The position numbers and the translations under genes were made by a program. 64,000 bases of DNA from Basidiobolus meristosporus CBS 931.73 (taxonomy: Eukaryota > Fungi > Basidiobolomycota). The notes under the pieces are model-generated. The model was given only the letters and a program-made list of their open reading frames with translations, was not told the origin of the DNA and did no database searches. Location of the stretch: assembly GCA_002104905.1 (NCBI GenBank), contig MCFE01000152.1, forward strand, positions 62,001-126,000, written 5' to 3'. Within the stretch, counting starts at the first letter, position 1. Each line of letters starts with the position of its first letter. This document shows, piece by piece, positions 4,566 through 30,692 of the stretch.

Positions 4566-4903
4566 TGTAAGAAACTTGTAATTCCACTTAAATTATCACC
4601 TAACTTAGTCACATAGATCATTATCTTCAAATCCTAGTGAATTCTGGCCAAATCCCTTGTTGGAAGTTACTTAGGGTTAGGGTAATATCAGGTACCCAGA
4701 ACATGAAAATAAGATTGGTTGTCCAACAGCCCTAAGCTTTACACACATGCTCTTGGGACCTTCCTAAGTCTATTCTACATGTTTGCAATGCCAAGATCAT
4801 GTAAAAGTATAAATACTACTTTCACATTCAATAAATCATTGAGTCAAAACCACATAATATACTTGTCCTCCCAATCACCTGCAATATCTCCTAAACTTTT
4901 ACA
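4566..4903 (+). repeat. Copia 3' LTR (~338 bp, TGTAA...TTACA)
   Basis: Follows the PPT, has TG...CA inverted termini, and homologous copies recur across the window. Confidence 0.85.
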
Positions 4904-5292
4904 ACCAGAAGTACTTTGGGTAGCAGATACTAATTAACATCTTGCTAACTCTTTCAAATTTTGGTGGTATCTCTAAGGGCTCATTCAGCTTGAGATGCCC
5001 CATGTATAACTTGGGCATTAGTGTAGGGATATTGTTGAAAATTAAATGCATTGCTCCCAGTCAAAAGCTTTTGCTTCAATAGACACCTGCTAGTTTAGAT
5101 ATCTCAGATTTCTGATCAGTGCATATTGCAGCCAATGGCTTAAAGCTTACCAACTTTGCTGCAATTGCATGCTGACTTCTGTACATTCCCTCTGTGTGAA
5201 TATGATCTTCTTAGTGTTGGTGTCTGGATTTTAATAATGTGTGTGAGTTATGGAGTAAATTCCCTGTATCTTGCACATTCAGCAGTAATACC

Positions 5293-5670
5293 TGTGGGCT
5301 ATTACTGACTGTACTTTGTGAGTGGGAGAGCTTGTAGGTCAAGTCAGTACCACTTGGATCAGAATAGCTTTCAATAGAAGGTAGCAAGGTAATAAAGACT
5401 TGTGTTTATTCCATCCAAATCCTCTTCTCCTTTTACTTGGTTCAATTGGATAGGCATATATATATCACTTGGGGGGGTTAGATAATAGATAATGTGTTAT
5501 AAAATAGGGGTGTGAGCACCTTCCTGTTATGGTAAGTGTTCTAACTACATAAGAGCAGGGATAGGAGGGAGGGCATGTTGTGGATTCATAGGGAGTATAC
5601 TGTGGGACTTCAGGTAGGACTTTGGGGAGAACTCTTGGGCAAAGTGTGGGTACAATAATTAGTACTCACA
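5293..5670 (-). repeat. Ty3-A 3' LTR
   Basis: Direct repeat of 19878-20253, visibly diverged. Confidence 0.9.
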
Positions 5671-12061: not shown

Positions 12062-15000
12062 TGTTGTGCATCAACATTTAAAACTTTGCCAATTTTACTC
12101 CATTTGAAAATCTAGTACCCTAACTGATTTTCCCTAACCCAAACATAACAAATCCCAGTTACAGTTTATTTGATCCCACCTCAGAATCTATTTTTAGCTA
12201 TCACACCTGATCTATTTTCAAATGGTCATCACGTTATCAACCTATCTGCCAAGCCTTCCCAGGTGATCAGTCATCTGAGATCTATCCAACCACTGTGCAG
12301 TTGCCAAGACATCAGTTGATTGATGATGTAATTTTCATTTATCTTATGCACCTATGAACACCCAAATTGATTTCAATCAATCCAGTCCCTTGGCGCTTAC
12401 TAATTCAACTTGATCAGAAAAGTATAAATAAAGTGTACTGAGCCTTTTGGTTTAGTGTGTATCTCAACAAAATTAAGATTCTGTCTCAGCAAAAATAAGA
12501 ATCCAACAATTCCGTTCTAGTTTCTATCCAAGCCTAGTATATCTAGCACTCCAAAGAACACCAAGCCTAGCCTGCCTAGCAAACAAATATCATTGCCTTT
12601 ATAGCCAACCCAGCTATATCCAAGACCAATATTAGATCAGAATCTTTCCGCTAATATTTCCGCCACTCTCTGACAATTCTAAGATTCTGCACTTAATTGT
12701 CCCTTTGGTTCAGTTAAACCATTCAAGAGTTTTATTACACTTTCTCTTGGATACAACATTTTTTTTGTTGAATTCCATTACATTCAGCCAATTAGAAGAT
12801 GTCCTCAGCAGCAAGCAATCTAAACCTTTCCATGTTGGAAGAAGCCAGAAGAAATCAGGAAGAACTTACTGAACAGCTTGAAAACATCATGCTTGAAAGA
12901 AATACCATGATGATTGAGCACTCAAAACTTGCCAAAACAAGATCTGATAATCACTGTAGAGATGAACTCCTTGAAGTTATATCCGGTTACCAAGATGAAA
13001 TTGGAATAATTAAGGAAGCACTGGAGAATATTGCCATAGTAATTGACAGCATTGAAAATCCACCAAGCCTTGCTCTGCATCAGCCACCAAGAAGTCATGC
13101 CTTTGAATCCTCCAGATCTACATCTCCTTCTAGACCTGCCCCGGTGGTTGTCCCAAGATCCTTGCCTGTTTATGCTGAAGGCACCAATGCCATCAAGAAT
13201 CCAACTGAGTTTCTTTACAAGTTTAGTCACGTCTTAGCTGCACACCAGCTAGACCCTGACACCAACTGGGCTAGACTTCTGCCTCTCTGTCTCACAATGC
13301 AAGATGCTGACTGGGTTGAAGTGAACATTCCTTCCAATAGTACGTGGAAAATTGCCCAAAACCTCTTTTGCAGCCATTTTAAAGATCCTCTCAAGAAAGC
13401 ACATCTGAACTGCGACTTATGGAAAACTAAAATGCAAAAAGGTGAATCTGTGCAACACTTCTGTGATAGATTCCAAAGACAAGTGAGATTAGCTGGAGTT
13501 AGTGATGATAATCCATCGCTTACTGCTCATTTTCTTTCAAACTTTTCACACCAGCTACAGAGCAATATTGCCATTGTCAAAGCATGCAACCCTGCATGTA
13601 CCTATGACCAGATCTCAGAGATATGTACACTGGCAATCACCTTGACTGCAGCTATTAGCCAGACTTCAGGCAGCTCAACCCAATATCCCACAACAGCCAG
13701 AAAAGAGACCAGTCATGTGACCAAGAAGCAGTCAACCGCTACTAAGCACTGTGAGCTTCATGGAAAATGCTATCATTCTACCAGTGAATGCAAAGGCATC
13801 ACCAAGCAGTCAAACAAGTCAGGAAACACCGCAGAAAAGCAGCAAAACACCAAAACTGATAATCCATATGCTGATGACAAGTGCTTTAAATGTGGAAATA
13901 GGGGACATAGATCACCTGCCTGTCCTGAGAAGAACTCCACACCATCAGCCAAAATTACCCAGATCCTTGATGATCATTCAGCCAATGATACAATGGGGTA
14001 TGAAGAAGTATATGAAGAACTTACAGTTCAAGATTATCACAACCTCTTTGAGTTTCCGGCTAAAATTGCAACTGTCCAAGAAAAGAAGCAACCAATCACA
14101 CAGCTCAAAGCCATAGAAGTGCCACTCACCCTCAATGGCCAATCATACGTTGCACTACTGGATACTGGATCATCCAACTCTATTGTATCACCCAATGTAG
14201 TCAGAGAACTCAATTTGGAGATAGAAAAACGACCAGGAAAAATCATTCTTGCAGCTAAGGATCTCTCAGCCCCAAGAATTGGCATTACCAACCCAATCAA
14301 CATACATTGTGGCTCAGTAACCATAATCCATCAGATGGAAGTGATTGACATACCAGATGGACCTCAGGTAGTCATTGGTCTGGACACCTTCACCAAACTT
14401 GGCTTTCACATAGGCAGACTACTGGTTTCCTATCCAGGAATCACTAAATCTCAGCCACTCATAATGGATCAAATCCCAGAGATTATCTCATCCCAACCGG
14501 AAGAAGAAGAGTTAACCCCAGCTTTTCAAGAATATTCTCAATCAGTCAAATTAGATATTCAGCCAGCCATATAGAGAAATCAGGCCATTCCAAGGAACAG
14601 CTTCTGCACCATCCCAGAATCCATTGTTACACTAGAGACCCCACCTGGTGAGTCAACATGGAGGAGGCAATACCCAATTCTGCATTCATGTCAACACTTA
14701 GTTGATGAGATAGTCCAAAAATGGGCTGACAATGGAATTATCACTCAAGCCCCTGTCAACACAACATTCAACAGCCCTTTGACGCTTGCACCAAAGAAAG
14801 ATGCTGATGGAAATCTAACCCTGAAGAGACCCTGTTTGGACCCCAGACCTCTGAACAAGCTTCTCCAAGATGACAAGTTTCCAATTCCAAGAATCCAAGA
14901 TATCTTTTCCGCACTATCAGGAGCAATAGTATTCTCCAAGTTGGACTTGAAGGATGCATATCACCGATTCCAGATCCATCCTGATCATCAGCATAAGACT

Positions 15001-17980
15001 GCCTTTACTTGGAATAATATGCAATGGATGTTTCAGGGAGCTCCCTTTGGCCTAAAGACACTTACCAGCAAGTTTCAGAGAGTCATGACTATAATACTCA
15101 AGAATGCACCATATGCATTGGTATTTGTTGATGATGTCATCATATTCTCCACTAACCGTGATGATCATGCAACCCATGTCACTGATGTAATCAACAGACT
15201 GACAACTGCTGGACTGATTCTCAATGCTGAAAAGTGCAGTTTTGCCCACCTCAAAATCAATCTACTTGGATTTATAGTGACACCAGCTGGCCACCAATTA
15301 GATCCTTTCAAACTGGTCAATATCCCAGAATGGCCAAAACCCACTAGCGCCAAGCAACTTCAACATTATCTTGGAGTATTCATCTATTTTAGGGAACACA
15401 TACCACTCATGTCCTCATTGAGTGCCCCATTAGATGCATTACGCCATAGCCCTGATCTCACCTCAGCCTGGAACAAGACTCATGACCAAGCCTTTGAGTC
15501 ACTCTGCCAACTGCTTCCACAAGCACCCACCTTTTCCTACCCAGACTTTACTAAGCCCTTTGTTGTTGCTACAGATGCATCTAATGTTGGGTTAGGGGCA
15601 GTCCTCTATCAAGATGAAGACCAAAATCCGCCTCACTGGATCTCTTTCCAAGCCAGGTCCCTACAACCTGCTGAGAGAAACTACTCTGCTACCAAGAAGG
15701 AGCTACTTGCCATAGTCTTTGCCTTGAAGAAGTTTCATCAGTATCTATGGGGTAATCCTTTTACCTTGTACACTGACCATCAAGCCCTTGTCTATATCCA
15801 CACTCAGAAGACTCTGACTCCAATGCTTACCAACTGGCTTGATACTCTACTTGATTATGAATATACAGTTATTCATTGCCCAGGAATTCTCAACATCCTT
15901 CCTGACCACCTGTCAAGACTTTTTCCAACTTCACCTTGGGAGGGACATGTGATTACTGATGTAATCAGTAAACTCTCTACAACTTCCAAAATAATTCCTC
16001 AACTGGATTCAGCAACTTAGAAAATCCCACCTGAAGAACAAAGGAAAACATTGATACAGAGGAGTCATTTACTTGGCCACTTTGGAGCTGACACACTTAT
16101 GAAGAAGCTACACTCTGATGGATATCACTGGCCAAATATCAAAGTTGACTGCTTAGAATTTGTCAAGTTGTGCAGAGAATGTCAACTTTACAATATCAGC
16201 CGCCATGGATTTCACCCTTTGAGCCCCATCCATGCAAGCCTTCCTATGGATCATATTGCAATTGATCTGGCTGGACCTTTCACCACTAGTGATGATGGTA
16301 ATCACTACCTCTTTGTAATTGTGGATGTCTGCACACGTTTTGTCTTCCTCAAAGCCATCCCAGACAAGTATGCGGCCACTATTGCACAAGAACTATTCAA
16401 GCTCTTCTGCCTTTTTGGATTCCCTAAGGTCATTTAATCGGATAATGGAACAGAATTTGTGAATCACGTGATCAAAGCCCTTTGCCAGAATAGCGCCATT
16501 GATCATTGTCTGATCACTCCATATCATCCCAAAGCTAATGGACTGGCTGAAAGACATGTTCAGACCTCAGTGAACATCATCAGGAAATCTATCAAAGGTA
16601 TCAAGAAGAATTGGGACAAGTACATTCCGACTGTACAGTATGCTATCAACACCAAAATTGCCACTCTACATGGATCAACCCCATTTTCCTTGATGTTTGG
16701 AAGAAGATACAACCACTTTGGAGACTACCAGAATACAGAGTTAGCAAGTTTGAATACAGATAAGCTAAAGAACCGGCTTGAGTACCTTACCAACATTGTC
16801 TACCCTGCTATCAGTGCCAGAAGTAAGGCCTCTCAGCAAAAGATGACTTCAACATACGCCTCAAGACACAGGAACAGCAGCTTCCCAGATGGGTCATATG
16901 TCATGACACTAGATCCAATCCGGCAATCTAAGCTTGACCTCAAGTATGAAGGACCATTCAAGGTTGTCAGACGCACTACTGGAGGATCTTATGTACTTCA
17001 AGATAACACTGGAGCACTGCTACCCAAGAACTTTCCACCTTCCTCACTCAAACTTATTTCTCAAGACCCAGTAACTTTGGAATCCTATGAAGTTGAAGCT
17101 ATTTTGGACCATGATGGAGAAGAACCAAATTGCCTTTATTTAGTCAAGTGGAAAGGCTATGATGCCAAACACAACACCTGGGAACCTTACACCAACTTTG
17201 ATGATGTTGCCATTATCAATCAGTATTGGAGCCGCAGAGGAACCCAGAAGGTATCAAAAAACTCCTCTTCCAGAAGGAAGTGATGTTGTGCATCAACATT
17301 TAAAACTTTGCCAATTTTACTCCGTTTGAAAATCTAGTACCCTAACTGATTTTCCCTAACCCAAACAAAACAAATCCCAGTTACAGTTTATTTGATCCCA
17401 CCTCAGAATCTATTTTTAGCTATCACACCTGATCTATTTTCAAATGGTCATCACGTTATCAACCTATCTGCCAAGCCTTCCCAGGTGATCAGTCATCTGA
17501 GATCTATCCAACCACTATGCAGTTGCCAAGACATCAGTTGATTGGTGATGTAATTTTCATTTATCTTATGCACCTATGAACACCCAAATTGATTTCAATC
17601 AATCCAGTCCCTTGGCGCTTACTAATTCAACTTGATCAGAAAAGTATAAATAAAGTGTACTGAACCTTTTGGTTTAGTGTGTATCTCAACAAAATTAAGA
17701 TTCTGTCTCAGCAAAAATAAGAATCCAACAATTCCGTTCTAGTTTCTATCCAAGCCTAGTATATCTAGCACTCCAAAGAACACCAAGCCTAGCCTGCCTA
17801 GCAAACAAATATCATTGCCTTTATAGCCAACCCAGCTATATCCAAGACCAATATTAGATCAGAATCTTTCTGCTAATATTTCCGCCACTCTCTGACAATT
17901 CTAAGATTCTGCACTTAATTGTCCCTTTGGTTCAGTTAAACCATTCAAGAGTTTTATTACACTTTCTCTTGGATACAACA
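12062..17980 (+). mobile_element. Full-length, recently inserted Ty3/gypsy chromovirus
   Basis: 697-bp LTRs (12062-12758, 17284-17980; TGTTG...CAACA) with 6 differences counted by eye, TSD ATACT, and PPT AGAAGGAAG. Confidence 0.97.
12799..17283 (+). pseudogene. Chromovirus single-frame gag-pol (CCHC, PR, RT, RH, INT, chromodomain) with three in-frame stops
   Basis: ORFs 12799, 14779, 16051 and 16459 share one frame, with stops at 14572, 16018 and 16435. Motifs: CFKCGNRGHRSPAC, LLDTGS, FVDD, ATDAS, HIAIDLAGP, SDNGTEF and YEVEAILDH...YLVKWKGY...TWEP. Confidence 0.95.
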
Positions 17981-19877: not shown

Positions 19878-20253
19878 TGTGGGTTATTACTGACTGTACT
19901 TTGTGAGTGGGAGAACTTGTAGGTTGAGTCAGTACAACTTGGTTCAGAACAGCTTCTAATAGAAGGTAGCAAGGTAATAAAGACCTGTGTCTATTCCATC
20001 CAAATCCTCTTCTCCTTTTACTTGGTTCAATTGGATAGGTATATATATATTACTTGGGGGGCTTAGATAATAAACAATGCGTTATAAATTGGAGTGTGAA
20101 CACATTCCTGTTATGGTAAGTGTTCTTACTAGATTAGGGCAGGGATAGGAGGGAGGGTATATGGAGGAATCATAGGGAGGATACTGGGGGAATTGGGTAG
20201 GACTCTGGGGAGAACTCCTGGGCAAAGAGTGGGTACCACATTTAGTACTCACA
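19878..20253 (-). repeat. Ty3-A 5' LTR
   Basis: Direct repeat of 5293-5670, followed on the minus strand by PBS TGGTGCC. Confidence 0.9.
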
Positions 20254-20822
20254 ATACCATCCATTGTGCTCTGAAAAGCCAGCAATCTTGCTGATGGCTG
20301 GGGTACCTCCAATGCAGATCATAATATGCGCTTTGAAATGATGGCCATTGAGTAGTATCCTACTGTAAAGCATACAAAATTCATCAGCAATGTGTACAAG
20401 TAGCTGTCCAGGTTGGATGTTGATTTAGGCCCAGATACCAGTGAAACCACCATCAGATTTTTGCTCTGCTAATGTAAGATAAGTGGCAAATTAAGGTTGA
20501 CAAGAGTTAGTGACCAACTGGATTTGCTGCTAAAGTACTTGCTTAGTGAGAATCCATCAGGTGCCAAGGCAGAGGCATGGTCATACATACCTTCAAGTAG
20601 CCCTTGTTTCTTAGGTGCTTGTAATGATTGCCATCAAATAGACTTGTTTTGTTGGATAGTGCCACATAGTGCCAGCCTGTTTATGGTGCCGGATTGATCT
20701 GGCACTCTACGGCACTATCTGGCACTATAATTTCTACCATGATGCTAGTGGTATGATACAGTTACTTGTAATTTTACTCAATCTTACTTATGTTGCTCAG
20801 AATAGTGCTTTCCTTGCATTAT

Positions 20823-21707
20823 TTACCCATCATAATGCTCCAGACACATTTCTCTCAGTGGATGTCTTCTTGTATGAACATACTGTGCATTAATAAGTAT
20901 CTTAACTATTTTACCTATTCTGCTGTTTTTACCTATATATGACTTTCCTCTGTATTTACCTGCCAATATGCTGAATCTCTTCAGATATCCAAATGTATGC
21001 TCTACCCTTACTCTGAAATGATTAAATATCTCATTGTAAAGCTTTGGCTGCCTGCTAAGCACACCATTCATTGGCTTCCTATAAGCTGTAATATATCCTA
21101 ATCTCTGACAATCCTCTCCTATATAGGCTAAGTCTGCCATACATTTCTCCCCTCTACTGAATTCAGGATGATTCTCTACCCAGACTGCTTTGTCATGCCT
21201 ACTTCCAGCAAATGGCCCACTAAACCAGATGATGTTACCCTCAATGTCAGAGAGTGCTTGAAACTTCACACAGTGTGCCTTGTACTTGCCAGAATAAAAG
21301 TGCCTCTGCCCTCTAGGAGGTCTGTTAATCCTCACTGGAAAGGTATCCAAAATACTCCTGATATGGAACCTGTTGCTGAACACTCTGGGATATGGAAGTC
21401 TATTGGAGCTTCTGAACCTAGTATTCCAAGCTTGCTCTAAGTCATTCATACCCTCTGCAAGGTGGTTCTCCATTGCTGTCAGCTGGGAATGAAAGCTTCT
21501 AGGACTTTTGTTGCCATGGATGGTGGGATGAAACCTTGTAGGGCAATAGTTCTTGTAATAGCAGAGAAGCTTAACAAGAGATCTCCTTGAGTAGATTGGG
21601 GTTGATGGTCCACAGTACTTGGAATAGATCCCTTCTAGTGTGTCAAAAGGAAATCTAGTGGTAGTGATGGGATTGATGAGAAAAGACCATTCAGATGAGT
21701 AAGTCAT
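20823..21707 (-). CDS. DDE_Tnp_4 / IS5-like transposase, 294 aa, uninterrupted
   Basis: Motifs LDTF..I.RP, YSGKYKAH.VKFQ, GSRHD, ADLAY.G and RVRVEHTFGYLKRFSIL, with the D-D-E triad present. Confidence 0.92.
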   Translation of the reverse strand: MTYSSEWSFLINPITTTRFPFDTLEGIYSKYCGPSTPIYSRRSLVKLLCYYKNYCPTRFHPTIHGNKSPRSFHSQLTAMENHLAEGMNDLEQAWNTRFRSSNRLPYPRVFSNRFHIRSILDTFPVRINRPPRGQRHFYSGKYKAHCVKFQALSDIEGNIIWFSGPFAGSRHDKAVWVENHPEFSRGEKCMADLAYIGEDCQRLGYITAYRKPMNGVLSRQPKLYNEIFNHFRVRVEHTFGYLKRFSILAGKYRGKSYIGKNSRIGKIVKILINAQYVHTRRHPLREMCLEHYDG

Positions 21708-22066
21708 ATTAAAATTGATGGATGATTGTATGGAATTGGTTTGAATTGATTCAGCACAATCCGCGTTATTTATCTGATTTTTAATACATTATGGTTAAAT
21801 CTCCATCAATTGCCATGTATCCCATCATTATGTTGCAAAAATCATCCGCAAACAATGCCTTGGTACTTTTATTAATACATTAATCATAGGTCTATAATCA
21901 AATAGGAAATCTGCGATTGATGTGATCTGATCTGTGTCAACGTGATCCAAGATGCATCATGCATAATATATGGAAAATTCAACAATCACATTAGTTTTCA
22001 TATATATTTGATATAAGACCAGGTTGATGCCAATATACCGCTGTATAAGTATCCAAATCCATTGCT

Positions 22067-23329
22067 ATGGTCCCCATACCAAGCCTCAACTCATCTTTAG
22101 TACAACCCAGACAAAACCCATCCCCCAGCTCACAGGCGCGGTCCGGACCAGAGAAGTCAATGTTGGATCTGTTTGAGTTCTTGCCAAATTATTTTAGTAT
22201 GGCCCAAGTGTCTATGATGAGCCTTCATACAGATATTTGGGCACTACTGATTAATCTAGCAGAACTAGATACCTCAGAGAGTCAACAAAGATGGAAGAAT
22301 TTGAGTAGAAAGCTGTGGCATGAGTTCTACATCAAGATGCCAGCTGATGTATGTAAAAAGATATATAACAAGACAAGTATTGAAATCAAGAATGAGCTGA
22401 GAGTGAGGGGATTTGACAAAGAAGCCGCACAGGAACAATTTTGCACGCAATTTGCACAGTACAGGCTGGATGCGTCCGTTTGTGCCTCAACTTTGGGAAC
22501 CAAAGAGATTTTGTATGAGTTTTTGCCTCAAATGACTAATGTACAATGTGATATATTAGTAGAGCTGAGTGGCTTCCAAGAGCAATATATACAGGACTCA
22601 TCCAGGCAACAGCTCCAAAGTATCAGACAGAGGGTAAGTGAATACCTTGAGGAATCAGATGGTGAGCTTCAGGAGGAAGAATACAGACCGCGAGCAACAT
22701 TGTCCAGATTGCGCCAGCACGCCTTGCTGGATTCCCTACCATCTCTTGCAGCCACAGCACGCCGGCACACATCAGTCCAGACCACGCCAACACCCTTTAC
22801 CAGAACGCCCTGCGTTGAGTCAATGCGCATTGAGTCAACAAATGTTGGGTCAACATGCGCGCTTCAGAGCAAAACTACAAGAACTTGCCAAACTGCTCAT
22901 TTAGACACAAGTCCATTGGAGCAGACCAAGCCGCGTCAACATGCAGCATCACATTGAACTCAGCCAAGGGCCATCTCAACGCATCAAGGCGTGCCTGCGC
23001 GTGCTGTTTTGCCTGACCATCAGCAAGTTACTTCTGGTGAACTGACTGATGATGACCAACATGAAGTGCCTCAACCACCAAAGCCCTTGGCAAGTAAATG
23101 AACACGTTAGCGCGTGGCACTACAGGCCGGTTCAGTTAGTTCAGTCAGAGCAATTCAGTGCGGCCAAGCTGCAGCATTGCACTCATCAACTAGGAGGCAA
23201 AATACTGACTACAAATACACAAGTAGCCAAGATAATAGTCATCCAGGAAGTAGTATAGGTGTGCAAAGTGAGTCACTACCAAATGCTCCAGTAGTAATCC
23301 CTGTGAGAAAAAAACCCAGGAGAAGATGA
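22067..23329 (+). pseudogene. Partner ORF of the IS5/PHIS-like element (~420 codons, 3 premature stops), unknown function
   Basis: ORFs 22067..22957 and 23114..23329 share a frame, separated by TGA, TGA and TAG. It contains a SAP-like segment (TSIEIKNELRVRGF) and a C-terminal basic RKKPRRR. Confidence 0.65.
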
Positions 23330-25037
23330 TGCAATTGCTTTGAATTGCTCACATTTGTAATGATCCCAACGATCCTTTTTTTTTGCAATCCAAATTGAGC
23401 CATTGCAAATCAGTGATCATCAAATTTTGGATATAAGTAATATCAAGGTCGTCTCACATTTGAGACAGAACCCCTATAAATAAGCACCCTGCATATATAT
23501 ACATCATCTGTAATACCAGTGCAGCTATTGGATCTGTTTTGCACCTACACAATTGCTTGCATGCTAGCTATGACACCTTGTCCAATCACTAGGATCAGGG
23601 ATTTACTTGCTCAATGGGCAAAATGGGATATTTGATGGTGAATCAGGTAGCTTTTTCAGTAGTCAATGAGCCAATTGGGGGCTGCCAGCTTCAGGATACT
23701 TCTGGACCAGTTAACCACTGAGATACTGTCCAATTGGAGTGAGGGTAACCAAAATGGTAAGTATCAGTGTAGTTTATAGTGTGATACACATTTATTTCCA
23801 TTTACATTAAAGAAACATATCCAAATACCGGATTTTACCTGCCATTATAGCGGTATCCAATTGCGCACGTGATGCAAACATTACAAGTTGGCGCAATCAT
23901 CCGTGCCAACCTCATTGTGTCAGATTGTGCCATAGTGTGCAAGATTGTCCCGCATAGTGCGAAATTGTCCAAGAATGATCCTGCCTTCTGGTAGCTATAA
24001 TATTGCACCCAATTGTTCTTTACAACCACGGATTGCGCCATGCACCCTGGCATGGTACAATGGAACAAGTCTAGTATATTGAAAATGTTTGTGCTTGATT
24101 GATACTGGGTGCGGTATTTCAAAACTTCACAGTATTTGTTGGACTGTGTAAGCTTCTTCAGATGGTGCATAACTGGAATATATCTGGAGTGTGAACAATG
24201 TTTTCCTCCAATAGTGGTAGATTCCTGACAAGTTGGACACCTTGCAACAGTGGCATTTTCTGATGTAAATGCCATGCAACTGCTAATACATGCTGTCATC
24301 AGGACAGTGTCTGGGTCATATGTTACAAGCTGTAAGATAGTTGTCCTCTTGTATCATGAACATGGTAAGTTGCATCCTGGAATGATTTTGGCAAGAGTTA
24401 GTAGTAAATTCTCAAAGCCCCATTACTGATATTTGTGGAACCATACAACTTCTCTTGCCAATATATCACACCATTCACCAGTAGATGGATTACTGGGCTC
24501 ACTTGGCTTCATTAAGTATGCTTAGCATGTCTTTTCTACCGGTGTCATCTCATTGCATAAAAGGGGCTTGCTAGACTCATGTAGGGTACTGTTTTTAGGG
24601 GGGATAGGCTCACAATCCATCAGTGAGCTTTCTTCTTCAGAGCTCTCACTTTGCATGCCATATTAAAAAGGCTGAGGTGAGCATTGTAATAGAGGTTGTG
24701 GCACCACATACACACATATATGTATTGCTGTTTCTCCTTTGGTTTGACCCACTTTCATATATATGCTGCCAAAGAATAATTCCAGGAAATTGTGCCTTTA
24801 CATTAAAGAAAGGTGTATCCACAGTGGATCTTGTGTCTTCTAAGTTTGAGCTTTATGTGGAATACCCATGTCAGTACTGGCTATGCAAATGAATATGGGT
24901 GATTCTACAGTTGAGTGTATGTTTAGTGCAAGGGGAGGTAGAAAAATGAAATGTAATTTGGCAAATTGGTCTGATAGCATTGCACATAAGATACATATTC
25001 TTGGCAGCTGAATATGTCTGGCAAGTGTCTTTTATGC

Positions 25038-26379: not shown

Positions 26380-29303
26380 TTACTATTTTAAGTGGATCCA
26401 GTTGGCCAGGACTTCCAATTGCCTTATATAGCAAGAAACTTGACAGTATTTAGACGGCCTCACATCAAGACTCTGATGGCATTTTTTTGGCAGTATGATG
26501 GCCTTCTGCTGGTTCTGTATAATTCTACTGTACCTATTTACCAAATGGTATTTCCATTTTCTACCTCCCCTTGTGCAATTCATATATTGCACTGTAGAAT
26601 CACCTTTTTTTATTTGCTTACCCACTACTACCTTGGGTATTCCACATATAGTTCAAATCAAAAAAACTATGGCCTCCTGCATACTAACCTCCACAAACAC
26701 GCACACCTGCCGCAGTTGGCATACTTCCATCACCTCAACTTTACGGCTTTTTAGTGTGATACTTGCAAAGTTGCCATATATCTTGTACTGCTGGTAGCAT
26801 ATACATCTTGCAAATATATGATTGGTTGTAGCCACTTCTGCCATGAATACCTCCTGAATATTGGCAAGGAACTTCTTGGTATTTAGCCAATATATTCCTT
26901 CACCCTGCTGGATTCTAATCCCCCTTATAGGTGTGCTCTGGCCTTTGTTTGTGTGAATTCTGTATTGAATGGTGTAGAAGTTGACTTGTGACCACAAGAA
27001 ATCTGGCATATCTTGGTAGAGTCTTCCTGAAAAAATTAGTTGCTTGTTGCACCCAACCCAACTTTACATTACTTAACTGATTACCCACACATTGGGGCTG
27101 CGTAGCTTCTTAATGCCATAGGCATAGGTGTCTCTATGTGCACATTTGCCCTCAGTATTTTCCAACTCTTTCTGGCTGTCTTCCATGTGCCAACTCATCA
27201 CATCTATGATGGCTTGAATGTAATATTCTAGATGAGATTGGGATATGGTAGTACCTGCAACTTTACTCATCTTGCTATCTCCCCACACATCCGCTCCATA
27301 GGAAACTCCCAAAAAGCGAAGCAAGGCCCAATATTCTCCACACACCATGCAAGATGGAGTAGAGAATGGATACAGTAGCAGCAGAGATCTACATGTTCAG
27401 CTTTATGTTTGTAGTATAGCTGCTCAAATCCTGTCACAAACTCCTCACACAACAGCTGTAGATGAATCAAGTTGGCATTGGTGATCTGCTTCTGGATAAA
27501 TATTCCTACAATGTCCACATATGACTCCCAATGCTTCCAATGTACTCTTGGTAGGAATGGCTTCAAAACACCACTTGAATAAATACATATCCAGTTCATC
27601 CAGTCTTTGCATTTGTATTGTTGCATATGCATATGAATATTAATTGGAGCCTGTGTGAAGTACTTAGGATAGCAGATACTCTGTAATATCTTGCCAATTT
27701 CTTCAAATTTCTCCGGTATCTCAAGGGGCTCATTTAGCTTGAAATATCCCATGTACAACTTGGTCATCAGTATAGGGATACTATTGAAAAGCAAATGCAT
27801 TGCTCCCAGTGGAAAGCTTTTGCTCCAACAGATACTCTTTATCTTAAGTATCCAGTTTCCAATTGATTCCATATTCCAGCCAATGGCTTATAGCATGCCA
27901 ACTTTGCTGCAGTTGCATGCTTACTTCTGTACATTCTTTCTGTGAAAAGATGATGTTCTTAGTGCTGGTTTTTGGGTAATAATAATGTATGTGAGTTATG
28001 GAGTAAATCCCCTGGATCTCACACATTTGACAGCAATACTGTCCATTGTGCCTGGAAAAACCTGCTATCTTGCTGATGGCTGGGGTATCTCCAATGCAGA
28101 TAATAATATGTGCATTCACATGACAGCCATTTACTGTTATCCTGCTGGAAATCATACAAAATTCATCCAGCAATGGATACAGGTAGCTATCCAGGCTGGA
28201 CAGTGATTTAGGCCCAGATACCAGTGAGACTACCATCAGATTGTTGCTCTGATACCGTAAGATGGGCAGCAGATTCAGATTGATGAGAATCAGTGGCCAG
28301 CAGGATTTGCTGGTAGAGTTCTTGTTTAATGAGAATTCTTCAAGTGCTAAAGCAAAGGCATGTTCATACATACCTTCAAAGTAGCCCTTGCTTCTTAGCT
28401 GTTTGTAATGTTTGCCATCAAATATACTGGATATGTTTGCACTTAATTGATACTGAGTGTGGTACTGTATAGCTTTGCAATATTTGTTGGACTGCATCAG
28501 CTTCCTCAGACAGGGTATGACCAGAATATATCCAGAGTGTGAACAATGTTTTCCCTCAATGGTGGTGGATTCCTGACAATTTGGACATGTTGCAATGGTA
28601 GCATTTTTGGATGTCAATGCCATGCAACTGTTAGCACATGCTGGAATCAGGACAGTCTCTGGATCATATGTTGCCACCCACATGATGGTTGTCCACTTGT
28701 ACCATGTACATGGTAAGTTGCATCCCAGTATGATTTTGACAAGAAGTAGTAATAAATCCTCAAGCCCCTGTTACTGATATTAGTGGAAACACACCACTTC
28801 TCTAGCCACTACATTACATCATTCACCAGTAGATGGATTACTGGGCTCACTTGGCTCCATAAAGTATCCTTGGCATTTGTTTCAACAGGTGTTGTCTCAA
28901 TGCATATAGGGATTTGACTGGTCTCATACAAGGTACTGTTGTTGGGGGAGATAGGCTCAAAATCCATCAGTGAACCTTCTTTGTCAGAGCTATTACTCTG
29001 TGTGCCATATTCAGAAGGCTGAGGTGAGCCTAAAGGTGTCACAAACTCACCTGACTCAGTTTGTGCAAGGTGACAAGGATGGCCAGGTGCCAATATAAAA
29101 GTATCAACTAGGTGGCAAGAAAATGTTGGTACAGTGGTGACCAATGAATGGTCAAATATGACTTGGGTGGCAAAACACTGGCTGTGATCCTTGTAATACT
29201 TCCTATGCTGTCTGCGTGCTTCATGGCTGAGAGGCTTGCCACAATAGCCACATGGTCTTTTTTCTCTTCTCTTACAGCGTTGAGTCACAGCAGTCTTGTC
29301 CAT
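26380..29303 (-). pseudogene. Tnp2-family (Transposase_21-like) transposase, fragmented
   Basis: Motifs WPLILINLNLLPILRY..NLM...GPK...DSYLYPLLDE, IGDTPAISK.AG, CCQMC, HSLLHLA..V...GPC.AFWEFPMER. The 3' boundary is approximate. Confidence 0.85.
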
Positions 29304-29891
29304 GGGGCAAACAGTTTGACCTTCAACAACATAACACTATTATATCACTTTTTGGTCAATACTCATGTGAACTTAAGTCAGGCATGTATTTGAGACATTG
29401 CACCTACATGAATGCAAGATTCAATGATGACCCGCCATAGTGAGTATTATAAATAAAGCTGTGACACCACATACACACGTATATGTAACACTATTTCCCC
29501 TTTGGTTTGACTCATTTCCATATATATGCCTCCAAAAAATAAAGCAAAGTCATCTGGTTCTCAACCAAACCCCACTGCTGATGTCAACAGAAGAACAGTT
29601 GGACAACAGCTTGCTTTGACATTCAGTGCAACAAGCAGGGCTACATCCAAAAAAGGCCCTGTGGACAGTGTGCTCATTGAAGGTAACAATGCGGACTCCT
29701 CAGGCTCTGAGTCAAGTAGGCAATTGAGAACCTCTGTGGAGCCACAAGCAGACTGTTATGCTCAGGCAGATGAGAATGTAGCAAATGCAGTACCCTCAGC
29801 TGAAGATCAGCAAGTGGCCATGATAACATCACCACCACCCATATTAGCAAGTATGTTGTCAGCTCATACTGAAGCATTAATGAAGCAATTA

Positions 29892-30100
29892 GACTTGTTC
29901 CATTGTGCCATTGATCATAGTACCAGAAAGTGCTGTATATTTTGCTATTAATTTGATATTTTAGGGTTGCATGCATGTCAATTTTGATCCCAAGTTGGCA
30001 CTGTTTGGCACCATCAGGCACTCTGTGGCATGATCAGGCACTATCTGGCATGCTATGGCATTATTGGGCACTATGATCAGCTGGAATGATGGAACAAGTG
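29892..30100. mobile_element. 209-bp MITE of the IS5/PHIS-like family, TA TSD
   Basis: Starts GACTTGTTCCATTGTGCCAT, nearly identical to the inverted right end of 20641-24071, and ends ATGGAACAAGTG. TA flanks both sides. It holds eight GGCA motifs at 10-bp spacing. Confidence 0.88.
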
Positions 30101-30692
30101 TATTTGGTGCAATGGCTGATAGGATAGATACAATGGCCCAGAGAAATCAGGAAGTAGTCCAGAAACAGGATGAGCAAATAACACATGTAGAGCAATCAAT
30201 ATCCCAGGTAGAGAAAGCAGTTTCTTTTCTGCAAAGAAGGAACTCAAGTGGCTCAATGTCACAGCCAAGAATTGAGCCATTTCCCAATGTAACAGCAGAG
30301 GAACACTGTACAGTCTTTGAAGCACAACAACAGTGCCCAAAGATAAAGCCCACAGAAAAACCTATCACAGCGTGGGAGGGAGACAATGTGGTGTTAATAC
30401 CCAAGCCTAAAAATCAAAAGACATTGAAGATCCATGAAGCTGTTGAGTGCAATAATGAAGAGTGGGCTAATATGCAAGAGGCCATCAGAAGTCTAGCATG
30501 CTATCACCTTAAGGCCAGCATACCATGGGACCATCAGGAACTCAAGGCCAAGCAGAATGCACTAGACTTGTTCCATGAGCATTATCCTGGATTCAAATAG
30601 GCAAACAGTTTTTGGACCAGCACTGGTATACTAAGAAAGTATCTTAAGAATAGCAGAAACAATCAAAGGCAGAAGAACAAGGGTGCCATGGC

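Follow-up and report, generated by a model that had tools for sequence, protein, structure and literature searches.

This locus of Basidiobolus meristosporus raises the question of whether the transposon it carries duplicates a TA dinucleotide upon insertion, as the original prediction had it, or a longer target, and whether it stands for a fungal lineage that has not been described. The element occupies positions 20640–24072 (3433 bp) of the window, i.e., the whole stretch of 64,000 nucleotides that was analyzed, and it is inserted in the gene for a CACTA-like transposase.

Ends and structure of the element

The inverted ends that had been predicted are present, with GACTTGTT at 20641–20648, its reverse complement at 24064–24071, and TA adjoining both. 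The perfect inverted repeat comprises 9 bp, AGACTTGTT (20640–20648 and 24064–24072), and the corrected ends, AGACTTGTT...AACAAGTCT, thus lie one base further out on each side than the GACTTGTT boundaries. When the inward stretch is included, 17 of 24 positions match between the two inverted-repeat ends. The end that characterizes the family is the 13-bp AGACTTGTTCCAT, seen in a MITE in the same window, at the right end of the 20640–24072 copy and in a 61%-identical relative (L003), whereas the left end of this copy has three substitutions compared with the AGACTTGTTCCAT of the relatives and the MITE. L001 and L003, two relatives with 61% identity, likewise have repeats of TAGTGCC with 10-bp spacing, comparable to the subterminal motifs listed in Table 1.

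Table 1 Features of the element, its empty site and related ends (positions in the window).
Feature	Position	Strand	Details
Left target-site duplication, AAT	20637..20639		Same as AAT of the paralogous empty site
Left terminal inverted repeat	20640..20663	+	9-bp core AGACTTGTT at 20640-20648 plus imperfect stretch
Subterminal GTGCC / GGCAC motifs	20659..20725		Six copies, mostly 10 bp spacing; element positions 20, 30, 47 and 62, 72, 82; candidate protein-binding array
Transposase gene	20823..21707	-	294 aa, uninterrupted ORF; DDE_Tnp_4, D121/D192/E236
Spacer between divergent genes	21708..22066		AT-rich, 359 bp, GC 0.32
Partner gene frame	22067..23329	+	Open at first, then continues past stops
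Right terminal inverted repeat	24049..24072	-	Reverse complement begins AGACTTGTTCCATTGT; 20/21 positions as in MITE left end
Right target-site duplication, AGT	24073..24075		One substitution from AAT
Paralogous empty site, AAT	28421..28423		Within uninterrupted CACTA-like Transposase_21 ORF 27844-28683, minus strand
MITE with ATT / ATT duplication	29888..30104	+	211 bp (29891-30101); duplication copies 29888-29890, 30102-30104
Solitary 13-nt end AGACTTGTTCCAT	30564..30576	+	ACT precedes

The transposase is intact as predicted, its 294-aa ORF being open throughout and containing the D-D-E triad. It matched Pfam DDE_Tnp_4 with an E value of 3.5e-22 (79 bits; cut-off 24.8), and the only other Pfam match was DDE_Tnp_1, with no N-terminal domain detected. 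The three catalytic residues are invariant across 24 relatives, and the length of the protein is the same in two of its relatives (P0001 and P0003). CpG is absent from the whole gene (885 bp).

The divergent second ORF (hereafter, ORF2 or the partner) is also present, with 296 aa open at 22067–22957. Its frame, of roughly 421 codons in all, contains three stops (TGA at 22955–22957, TGA at 23099–23101, and TAG at 23108–23110) and ends at 23329 with a basic KKPRRR tail. This copy is decaying, with the three stops in the partner frame, the left-end substitutions and one mismatch in the duplication, while its transposase ORF is whole. The spacer between the two genes is a putative bidirectional promoter.

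The N-terminal part of the partner is 60% identical to a partner fragment from L003 (E 2e-18), and the divergent two-gene layout is common to three relatives (L003, L006, and L129). The divergent partner gene is conserved within the family. No Pfam match was obtained for the partner ORF even at E ≤ 10, and the same threshold gave none for ORF2 residues 40–135, for its C-terminal piece, or for the partner proteins of the relatives; searches of NCBIfam, a word search, and ESM Atlas features likewise returned no match for the partner ORF. The partners encoded by L129 and L006 resembled neither ORF2 nor one another, and the AlphaFold model of the partner had a pLDDT of 39.8. Inspection by eye showed a helical stretch with the pattern W-x17-W-x7-W at partner residues 58–84.

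Length of the target-site duplication

An uninterrupted paralogue of the host repeat at 28034–28906, 7.8 kb away, provided an empty site with which the models of insertion could be compared. In this test, which used one paralogue of about 81% identity, a 3-bp A-N-T duplication scored 73 and was the only gapless model, against 68 for TA and 66 when both TA were kept. The TA model required a 3-bp gap precisely at the junction. The offset arithmetic agrees with the 3-bp model (7784 − 4348 = 3436 = 3433 + 3). Comparison with the NCBI assembly yielded no additional empty site, the window being 100% identical to it over 20.4 kb. Two further models were rejected: a Spy-like one having 10-bp ends without duplication, which scored 70 and needed a gap, and a 5-bp duplication, for which the flanks differ (AAATA and TAGTA).

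The flanks of related elements were read as well. In the 61%-identical relatives, the end ...AACAAGTCT is followed by ATT (L003) or AAT (L005), and in a 35% relative (L006) the end ...ACAAGTCT is followed by ATT. A full 5.9-kb relative (38%) on a metagenome contig (L130) has ATT on both sides, and two others (L131 and L133) have it on the single side visible in each. Across the 11 ends read, an A is found three bases before the terminal A in 10 and the adjoining T in all 11, and the middle base agrees across both clean pairs (the MITE and L130). One related insertion site (L129 and L132) has GGT instead of A-N-T. Most of the paired duplications are ATT, and the same pattern would arise from a 2-bp duplication within a target of A-T-TA-T-T.

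The empty site favors a duplication of 3 bp, A-N-T, though a 3-bp indel at the junction is possible. The atypical TA duplication was thus not borne out: the boundary moves by one base, the duplication is 3 bp by the empty site, and A-N-T is found at the MITE and at the ends of the relatives, the GGT site excepted. The apparent TA consists of the final base of the duplication and the first base of the inverted repeat, and it was read as a duplication because the ends had been set one base too far in. As a product of boundary placement, it is removed as a false lead.

The competing view places the ends at GACTTGTT...AACAAGTC and has TA duplicated inside a wider A-N-TA-N-T target, in which case the element would come from a PHIS lineage that duplicates TA, whether this is a PHISTA-like or a new one. 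Such a lineage has precedent, given that fungal PHIS elements with TA duplications exist (PMC12730594), and it would suit both the TA that adjoins GACTTG at all ends read and the difference between the 3-bp flanks of the 20640–24072 copy (AAT and AGT, one substitution apart). Nonetheless, we regard it as very unlikely: it needs a 3-bp insertion right at the junction of the empty-site alignment and an ad hoc 6-bp target to explain the outer A and T, the middle bases agree in the MITE and L130 pairs, and PHISTA elements have extra genes and GGGGG-starting termini. Moreover, a TA duplication, even if true, is no longer new for fungal PHIS elements (PHISTA; PMC12730594).

Cognate MITE and solitary end

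The mobility of the family that had been predicted is supported by the cognate MITE with its perfect duplication. The ends of the MITE match the 13-bp AGACTTGTTCCAT with one mismatch, and eight GGCA motifs within it are spaced exactly 10 bp (29997–30070). Removal in silico of the MITE along with one copy of the duplication restored an ORF of 291 aa. No paralogue of this host ORF was found within the window, and a word search with its right-hand piece gave no match.

The solitary end is possibly the remnant of a lost copy, and no partner end was found for it. When metagenome contigs were scanned for exact 16-mer matches to the end sequence of the family, at least 120 were obtained; none of those listed carried the subterminal motifs or had a plausible second end to pair with, and the matches listed are due to chance.

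Assignment and comparison with known systems

The element is very probably a cut-and-paste DNA transposon of the Pangu/Harbinger2 type, within the PHIS superfamily, an assignment made by structural features. The prediction of an IS5/PHIS-like transposon (PIF/Harbinger-ISL2EU-Spy) with two genes, a DDE_Tnp_4 transposase and a partner ORF, was upheld. The proposal of an undescribed lineage did not hold, as the structural features are those of the published Pangu group, which has been reported in fungi. Given that the A-N-T duplication is that of Pangu/Harbinger2, we consider the element to be an ordinary new family of a described group.

Pangu, which is Harbinger2 in Repbase (PMC12730594), was characterized by Han et al. 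(2015, Mobile DNA 6:12; PMC4482050) as a group of elements of about 3.5 kb (mean about 3487 bp) with an A-N-T duplication and terminal inverted repeats of 11–40 bp that usually start with AG or GG. These encode a DDE-only transposase (216–537 aa) and a second protein that lacks known motifs, although two published Pangu partners bear Myb_DNA-bind_4 (PMC4482050). In the fungal Pangu_Tsti, for example, a transposase of 268 aa is accompanied by a motif-less partner of 317 aa (PMC4482050). Both ascomycete and basidiomycete hosts of the group had been published (Talaromyces, Tuber, Tremella, Melampsora, and Puccinia), and its fungal members include a MITE family of 199 bp (PMC4482050). The terminal motif AGACTTG was absent from the published Pangu supplementary files that were searched.

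In the mechanism that we propose, the compact DDE transposase (D121, D192, and E236) would cleave the element at its AGACTTGTTCCAT ends. For integration it would cut an A-N-T target with a stagger of 3 nt, the repair of which would give the 3-bp duplication. The apparent TA would then be the T of A-N-T joined to the element's own terminal A. The partner may act like the Myb-like partners known from PIF/Harbinger and help to bring the transposase to the GGCAC arrays, which are helically phased and lie near the ends.

A bolder extension, which we consider unlikely, is that the AGACTTG family, together with its relatives from metagenomes, represents a deep branch separate from Pangu and next to it. 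Here, a minimal 294-aa transposase without a DNA-binding domain of its own would depend wholly on a fast-evolving partner that reads the 10-bp phased GGCAC arrays. The transposase gene would in that case have lost its CpG as a way of evading the CpG-directed mutation by which the CpG-rich partner gene is being broken.

The transposase could also be a separate deep lineage nearer to bacterial IS5 than to Pangu, i.e., a new group that duplicates A-N-T and whose likeness to Pangu is convergent or ancestral. The compact protein of 294 aa with no detected N-terminal domain is compatible with this, as are the few close relatives (18 at E ≤ 1e-30 among 1.8 billion representatives, nearly all on metagenome contigs) and a weak match of the core to bacterial IS5 models (NF033581, E 2.5e-12). 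However, that match reached 46.7 bits, far under the NCBIfam cut-off of 140, all the structural features of Pangu are present, and Han et al. had already set Pangu, with transposases in the size range given above, beside bacterial IS5 (PMC4482050); we therefore give this possibility very little weight. The catalytic core is similar to that of bacterial IS5, with 27–35% identity by tblastn in the core alone, and IS5 elements use an A-N-T target too according to Han et al. (PMC4482050), whereas the element analyzed here resides in a eukaryote and has a second gene.

The boundaries of the element are real, because they coincide to the base with a break in the host gene whose paralogue is uninterrupted, bound the MITE with its duplication, and end related elements from independent samples in which the flanks differ; a 9-bp inverted repeat arising by chance around relic genes of a larger repeat, with no discrete mobile element, is practically excluded, even though the 8-mer GACTTGTT is not significantly enriched by itself (6 matches in the window vs. 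2.7 expected).

The assignment would add a Pangu/Harbinger2 family and its cognate MITE to an early-diverging fungus and extend the fungal range of the group, with little importance beyond annotation. A modest opening onto the role of Pangu partners is offered by this partner protein together with the phased arrays of GGCAC.

Canonical PIF/Harbinger elements have TWA (TTA/TAA) duplications and a Myb/SANT-like partner. They share with the element a DDE_Tnp_4-type transposase, two genes, a 3-bp duplication, subterminal repeats, and MITEs, but the flanks here are AAT, AGT, and ATT, never TTA or TAA at the empty-site boundary, the transposase is shorter, and the partner has no Myb/SANT domain detectable with Pfam at E ≤ 10. 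Spy elements make no duplication and insert between AAA and TTT, flanks that were not seen at the element, the MITE, or L130. Tc1/mariner elements duplicate TA, in contrast to the 3 bp read here, and no Tc1/mariner family was among the Pfam matches. ISL2EU elements are distinguished by an AT duplication, GG ends, THAP/HTH_Tnp_4 on the transposase, and a YqaJ partner (PMC4482050); none of these domains was found in the element, the ends of which start with AG. A related DDE core within PHIS is nonetheless common to the element, ISL2EU, and Spy.

PHISTA elements, described in 2025, are PHIS elements of fungi (Pucciniales) with TA duplications and a third protein, often with a TET/JBP gene, and sit near Nuwa (PMC12730594). 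The element resembles them in being a fungal PHIS element and in that a boundary placed at G leaves TA adjoining its ends. It differs in having two genes only, in the AG start of its ends, where PHISTA consensus sequences begin GGGGGTATC (GGGGG), and in the one empty site, which supports 3 bp and not 2.

The closest resemblance in structure is to Pangu, with which the element shares the A-N-T duplication, short ends starting with AG, a DDE transposase without other domains, a motif-less second ORF, and its size (3433 bp, compared with the Pangu mean of about 3487 bp). Its host, by contrast, is a zoopagomycete, a group absent from the Pangu survey of 2015.

Transposase and partner gene

As originally predicted, the transposase ORF is uninterrupted. 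Its best Pfam match is DDE_Tnp_4 (E = 3.5e-22, with 79 bits and the cut-off at 24.8); DDE_Tnp_1 matches less well, and no further domain was found. The D-D-E triad is also present (D121, D192 and E236, unchanged across 24 aligned relatives), and the ORF is whole, equal in length to those of its relatives. Its core scored 46.7 bits against the bacterial model NF033581 (cut-off 140), and plasmid IS5 copies were 27–35% identical by tblastn, over the core only. An exhaustive protein search with the transposase gave 1379 relatives at E ≤ 0.001 and 18 at E ≤ 1e-30, nearly all on short metagenome contigs. The closest relatives (P0001 and P0003, from Logan assemblies) are 294 aa long and 61% identical. 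CpG is absent from the 885 bp of the transposase gene, and AGA and AGG alone encode its 28 arginines; the partner ORF contains 21 CpG and includes CGN codons.

The second ORF, correctly described as divergent from the transposase, has an N-terminal part that is 60% identical (E = 2e-18) to a partner fragment beside the transposase of a 61% relative. The divergent two-gene layout recurs in relatives more distant than these, on contigs L006 and L129. By these two signs, the partner gene is conserved within the family. Its frame continues in phase beyond the ORF, across three stops, and ends in a basic tail, and an ancestral gene of ~421 codons may be taken as a candidate length. TGA accounts for two of these stops, each of which could derive from a CGA codon. 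The partner matched nothing in Pfam, NCBIfam, the word search or the Atlas, its read-through frame being searched in pieces; the read-through with X at the stops was used for tblastn against the window alone, and the structural model was too poor for use. By eye, the tryptophan spacing of residues 58–84 recalls Myb-like helices, which offers a lead; two published Pangu partners carry Myb_DNA-bind_4 (PMC4482050).

Element ends and target duplication

Inverted copies of GACTTGTT lie at the ends as claimed, with TA adjoining each. Such an 8-mer alone carries no significance (6 matches in the window vs 2.7 expected), and the case for true ends is built on the comparisons that follow. The sequences flanking the element are repeated in the window, and the second flank copy is unbroken at the insertion point, where an open 279-aa ORF matches Transposase_21 (CACTA/EnSpm-type; E = 8.7e-13). 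This copy therefore represents a paralogous empty site, ~81% identical to the element flanks. The site as it stood before insertion was reconstructed in four ways, and each version was compared with the paralogue by alignment. Ends at 20640 and 24072 with a 3-bp duplication scored 73 with no gap at the junction, compared with 70 and a 1-bp gap for 10-bp ends without duplication, 68 and a 3-bp gap for ends at 20641 and 24071 with a TA duplication, and 66 and a 5-bp gap if both TA were kept. The coordinate offsets agree with a 3-bp duplication (7784 − 4348 = 3436 = 3433 + 3). Based on the alignment and the offsets, the element is 3433 bp long with ends AGACTTGTT...AACAAGTCT, flanked by AAT at the left and AGT at the right; given that the empty site reads AAT, the right duplication copy carries one substitution.

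The window contains three diverged CACTA/EnSpm-like copies with a Transposase_21 ORF (~80–90% identical), and the middle one is interrupted by the Pangu-type element. It also contains what looks like a young Ty3/gypsy chromovirus (flanking 300-bp repeats 99% identical; ORFs for gag, zinc knuckle, aspartyl protease, RT, RNase H and chromodomain) and encodes a histone H3 variant protein. An exact match to this protein lies on contig MCFE01000152.1 of the Basidiobolus meristosporus assembly GCA_002104905.1, where the surrounding 20.4 kb agree at 100% identity with window 31183-51620, which places the window at contig positions 62001-126000.

Window coordinates of the element, its copies and other features.
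Feature	Position	Description
Two-gene transposon	20640-24072	3433 bp
Left inverted 8-mer	20641-20648	GACTTGTT
Right inverted 8-mer	24064-24071	reverse complement
Left subterminal array	20659-20725	GTGCC at element positions 20, 30, 47; GGCAC at 62, 72, 82
Transposase ORF	20823-21707	minus strand, 294 aa
Partner ORF	22067-22957	296 aa
Partner frame, in-phase limit	23329	stops at 22955, 23099, 23108
Left flank and its repeat	20252-20596; 28034-28379
Right flank and its repeat	24070-24779; 28418-29542
MITE	29891-30101	211 bp
MITE GGCA motifs	29997-30070	eight
ORF restored on MITE removal	29511-30597	291 aa
Lone family end	30564-30576	AGACTTGTTCCAT
CACTA/EnSpm-like copy, first	4572-5670
CACTA/EnSpm-like copy, middle	19878-20639 + 24076-24990
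CACTA/EnSpm-like copy, third	27657-29542
Apparent Ty3/gypsy chromovirus	12062-17583
Region encoding a histone H3 variant	within 31183-51620

Other copies and relatives

The cognate MITE is bounded by 13-bp ends, AGACTTGTTCCAT, that differ at one position; its ATT/ATT duplication is perfect, and its left end matches the right end of the element at 20 of 21 positions. Removal of the MITE and one duplication copy restores an ORF, indicating that it is a discrete insertion. The joined host flanks were used for this reading-frame check and for tblastn against the window, and pieces for database searches; a word search with the right-hand piece of the interrupted ORF found no relatives. A lone exact 13-nt family end, preceded by ACT, lies 463 bp to the right of the MITE, with no partner end or further similarity found.

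The transposase-side end was reached in two contigs of the 61% relatives, where ...AACAAGTCT is followed by ATT (L003) or AAT (L005). The 35% relative (L006, a 9.6-kb metagenome contig) ends in ...ACAAGTCT followed by ATT. The 38% relative (P0019; L129–L134) has ends AGACTTGTAATCATTTAGC / AGAGTTGTAATCACTTAGC; its L130 copy is complete with ATT at both sides, L131 and L133 have ATT on the single side each reaches, and one insertion site, common to L129 and L132, is GGT. Over all eleven ends read for this element, the MITE and the relatives, with the solitary one at 30564 included, T always adjoins the terminal A, and A occupies the third position out in ten. At ~5.9 kb, this metagenomic 38% relative carries three genes; the third ORF (724 aa; L129:3801-5975) resembles JmjC hydroxylases faintly (E = 0.0038, short of the cut-off) and recalls the oxygenase genes of fungal transposons in PMC12730594.

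The TA duplication of the original prediction is replaced, as that TA comprises the final T of a 3-bp duplication and the initial A of the element. Duplication of TA within an A-T-TA-T-T target could imitate the ATT pairs that make up most of the duplications, and the only empty site on hand is a diverged paralogue, so a slim chance is left for it; however, pure TA duplication does not predict the outer A and T at the flanks of the ends, and we consider it very unlikely. The 3-bp A-N-T duplication is the reading adopted here.

Proposed mechanism and classification

The element has a catalytic triad, conserved ends and a 3-bp duplication. The transposase would cleave at the AGACTTG ends and attach these to target DNA opened at A-N-T by cuts staggered by 3 nt, and the partner protein may help to bring the transposase to the ends. 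The subterminal GTGCC/GGCAC array is a plausible candidate docking site; the GGCA motifs of the MITE recur at exact 10-bp steps, one helical turn, and the 61% relatives (L001 and L003) have TAGTGCC repeats at the same spacing. The left end of this copy is three positions off the family end and its duplication one position off, and, given also the broken partner frame, it is probably unable to move by itself any longer. It might nevertheless still supply transposase to other copies.

Placed by structural criteria against published descriptions, the element is a real transposon and most probably a new family of the known Pangu group. It has neither the TWA duplication of canonical Harbinger, nor the AT duplication, THAP/HTH domains and YqaJ partner of ISL2EU, nor the AAA|TTT target without duplication of Spy, and it does not fit Tc1/mariner. 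PHISTA, the rust-fungus PHIS lineage with TA duplication named by Kojima 2025 (PMC12730594), has consensus ends beginning GGGGG and extra genes, and the element has none of the three. Pangu, equivalent to Repbase Harbinger2 according to the same study, was described by Han et al. 2015 (PMC4482050) as a PHIS group whose A-N-T duplications were verified against paralogous empty sites, and which is spread over animals, algae and fungi and lies beside bacterial IS5 in the tree. Its ends are 11–40 bp and usually start with AG or GG, its mean length is ~3487 bp, and its two ORFs encode a DDE transposase without other domain and a protein without known motif. The fungal families in Table S3 of that study come from Talaromyces, Tuber, Tremella, Melampsora and Puccinia, and include one compact family (268-aa transposase, 317-aa partner) and one 199-bp MITE family. 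The element shares all structural criteria of Pangu (A-N-T duplication, AG ends, length and two ORFs), and the lineage, initially suggested to be undescribed, probably belongs with this group.
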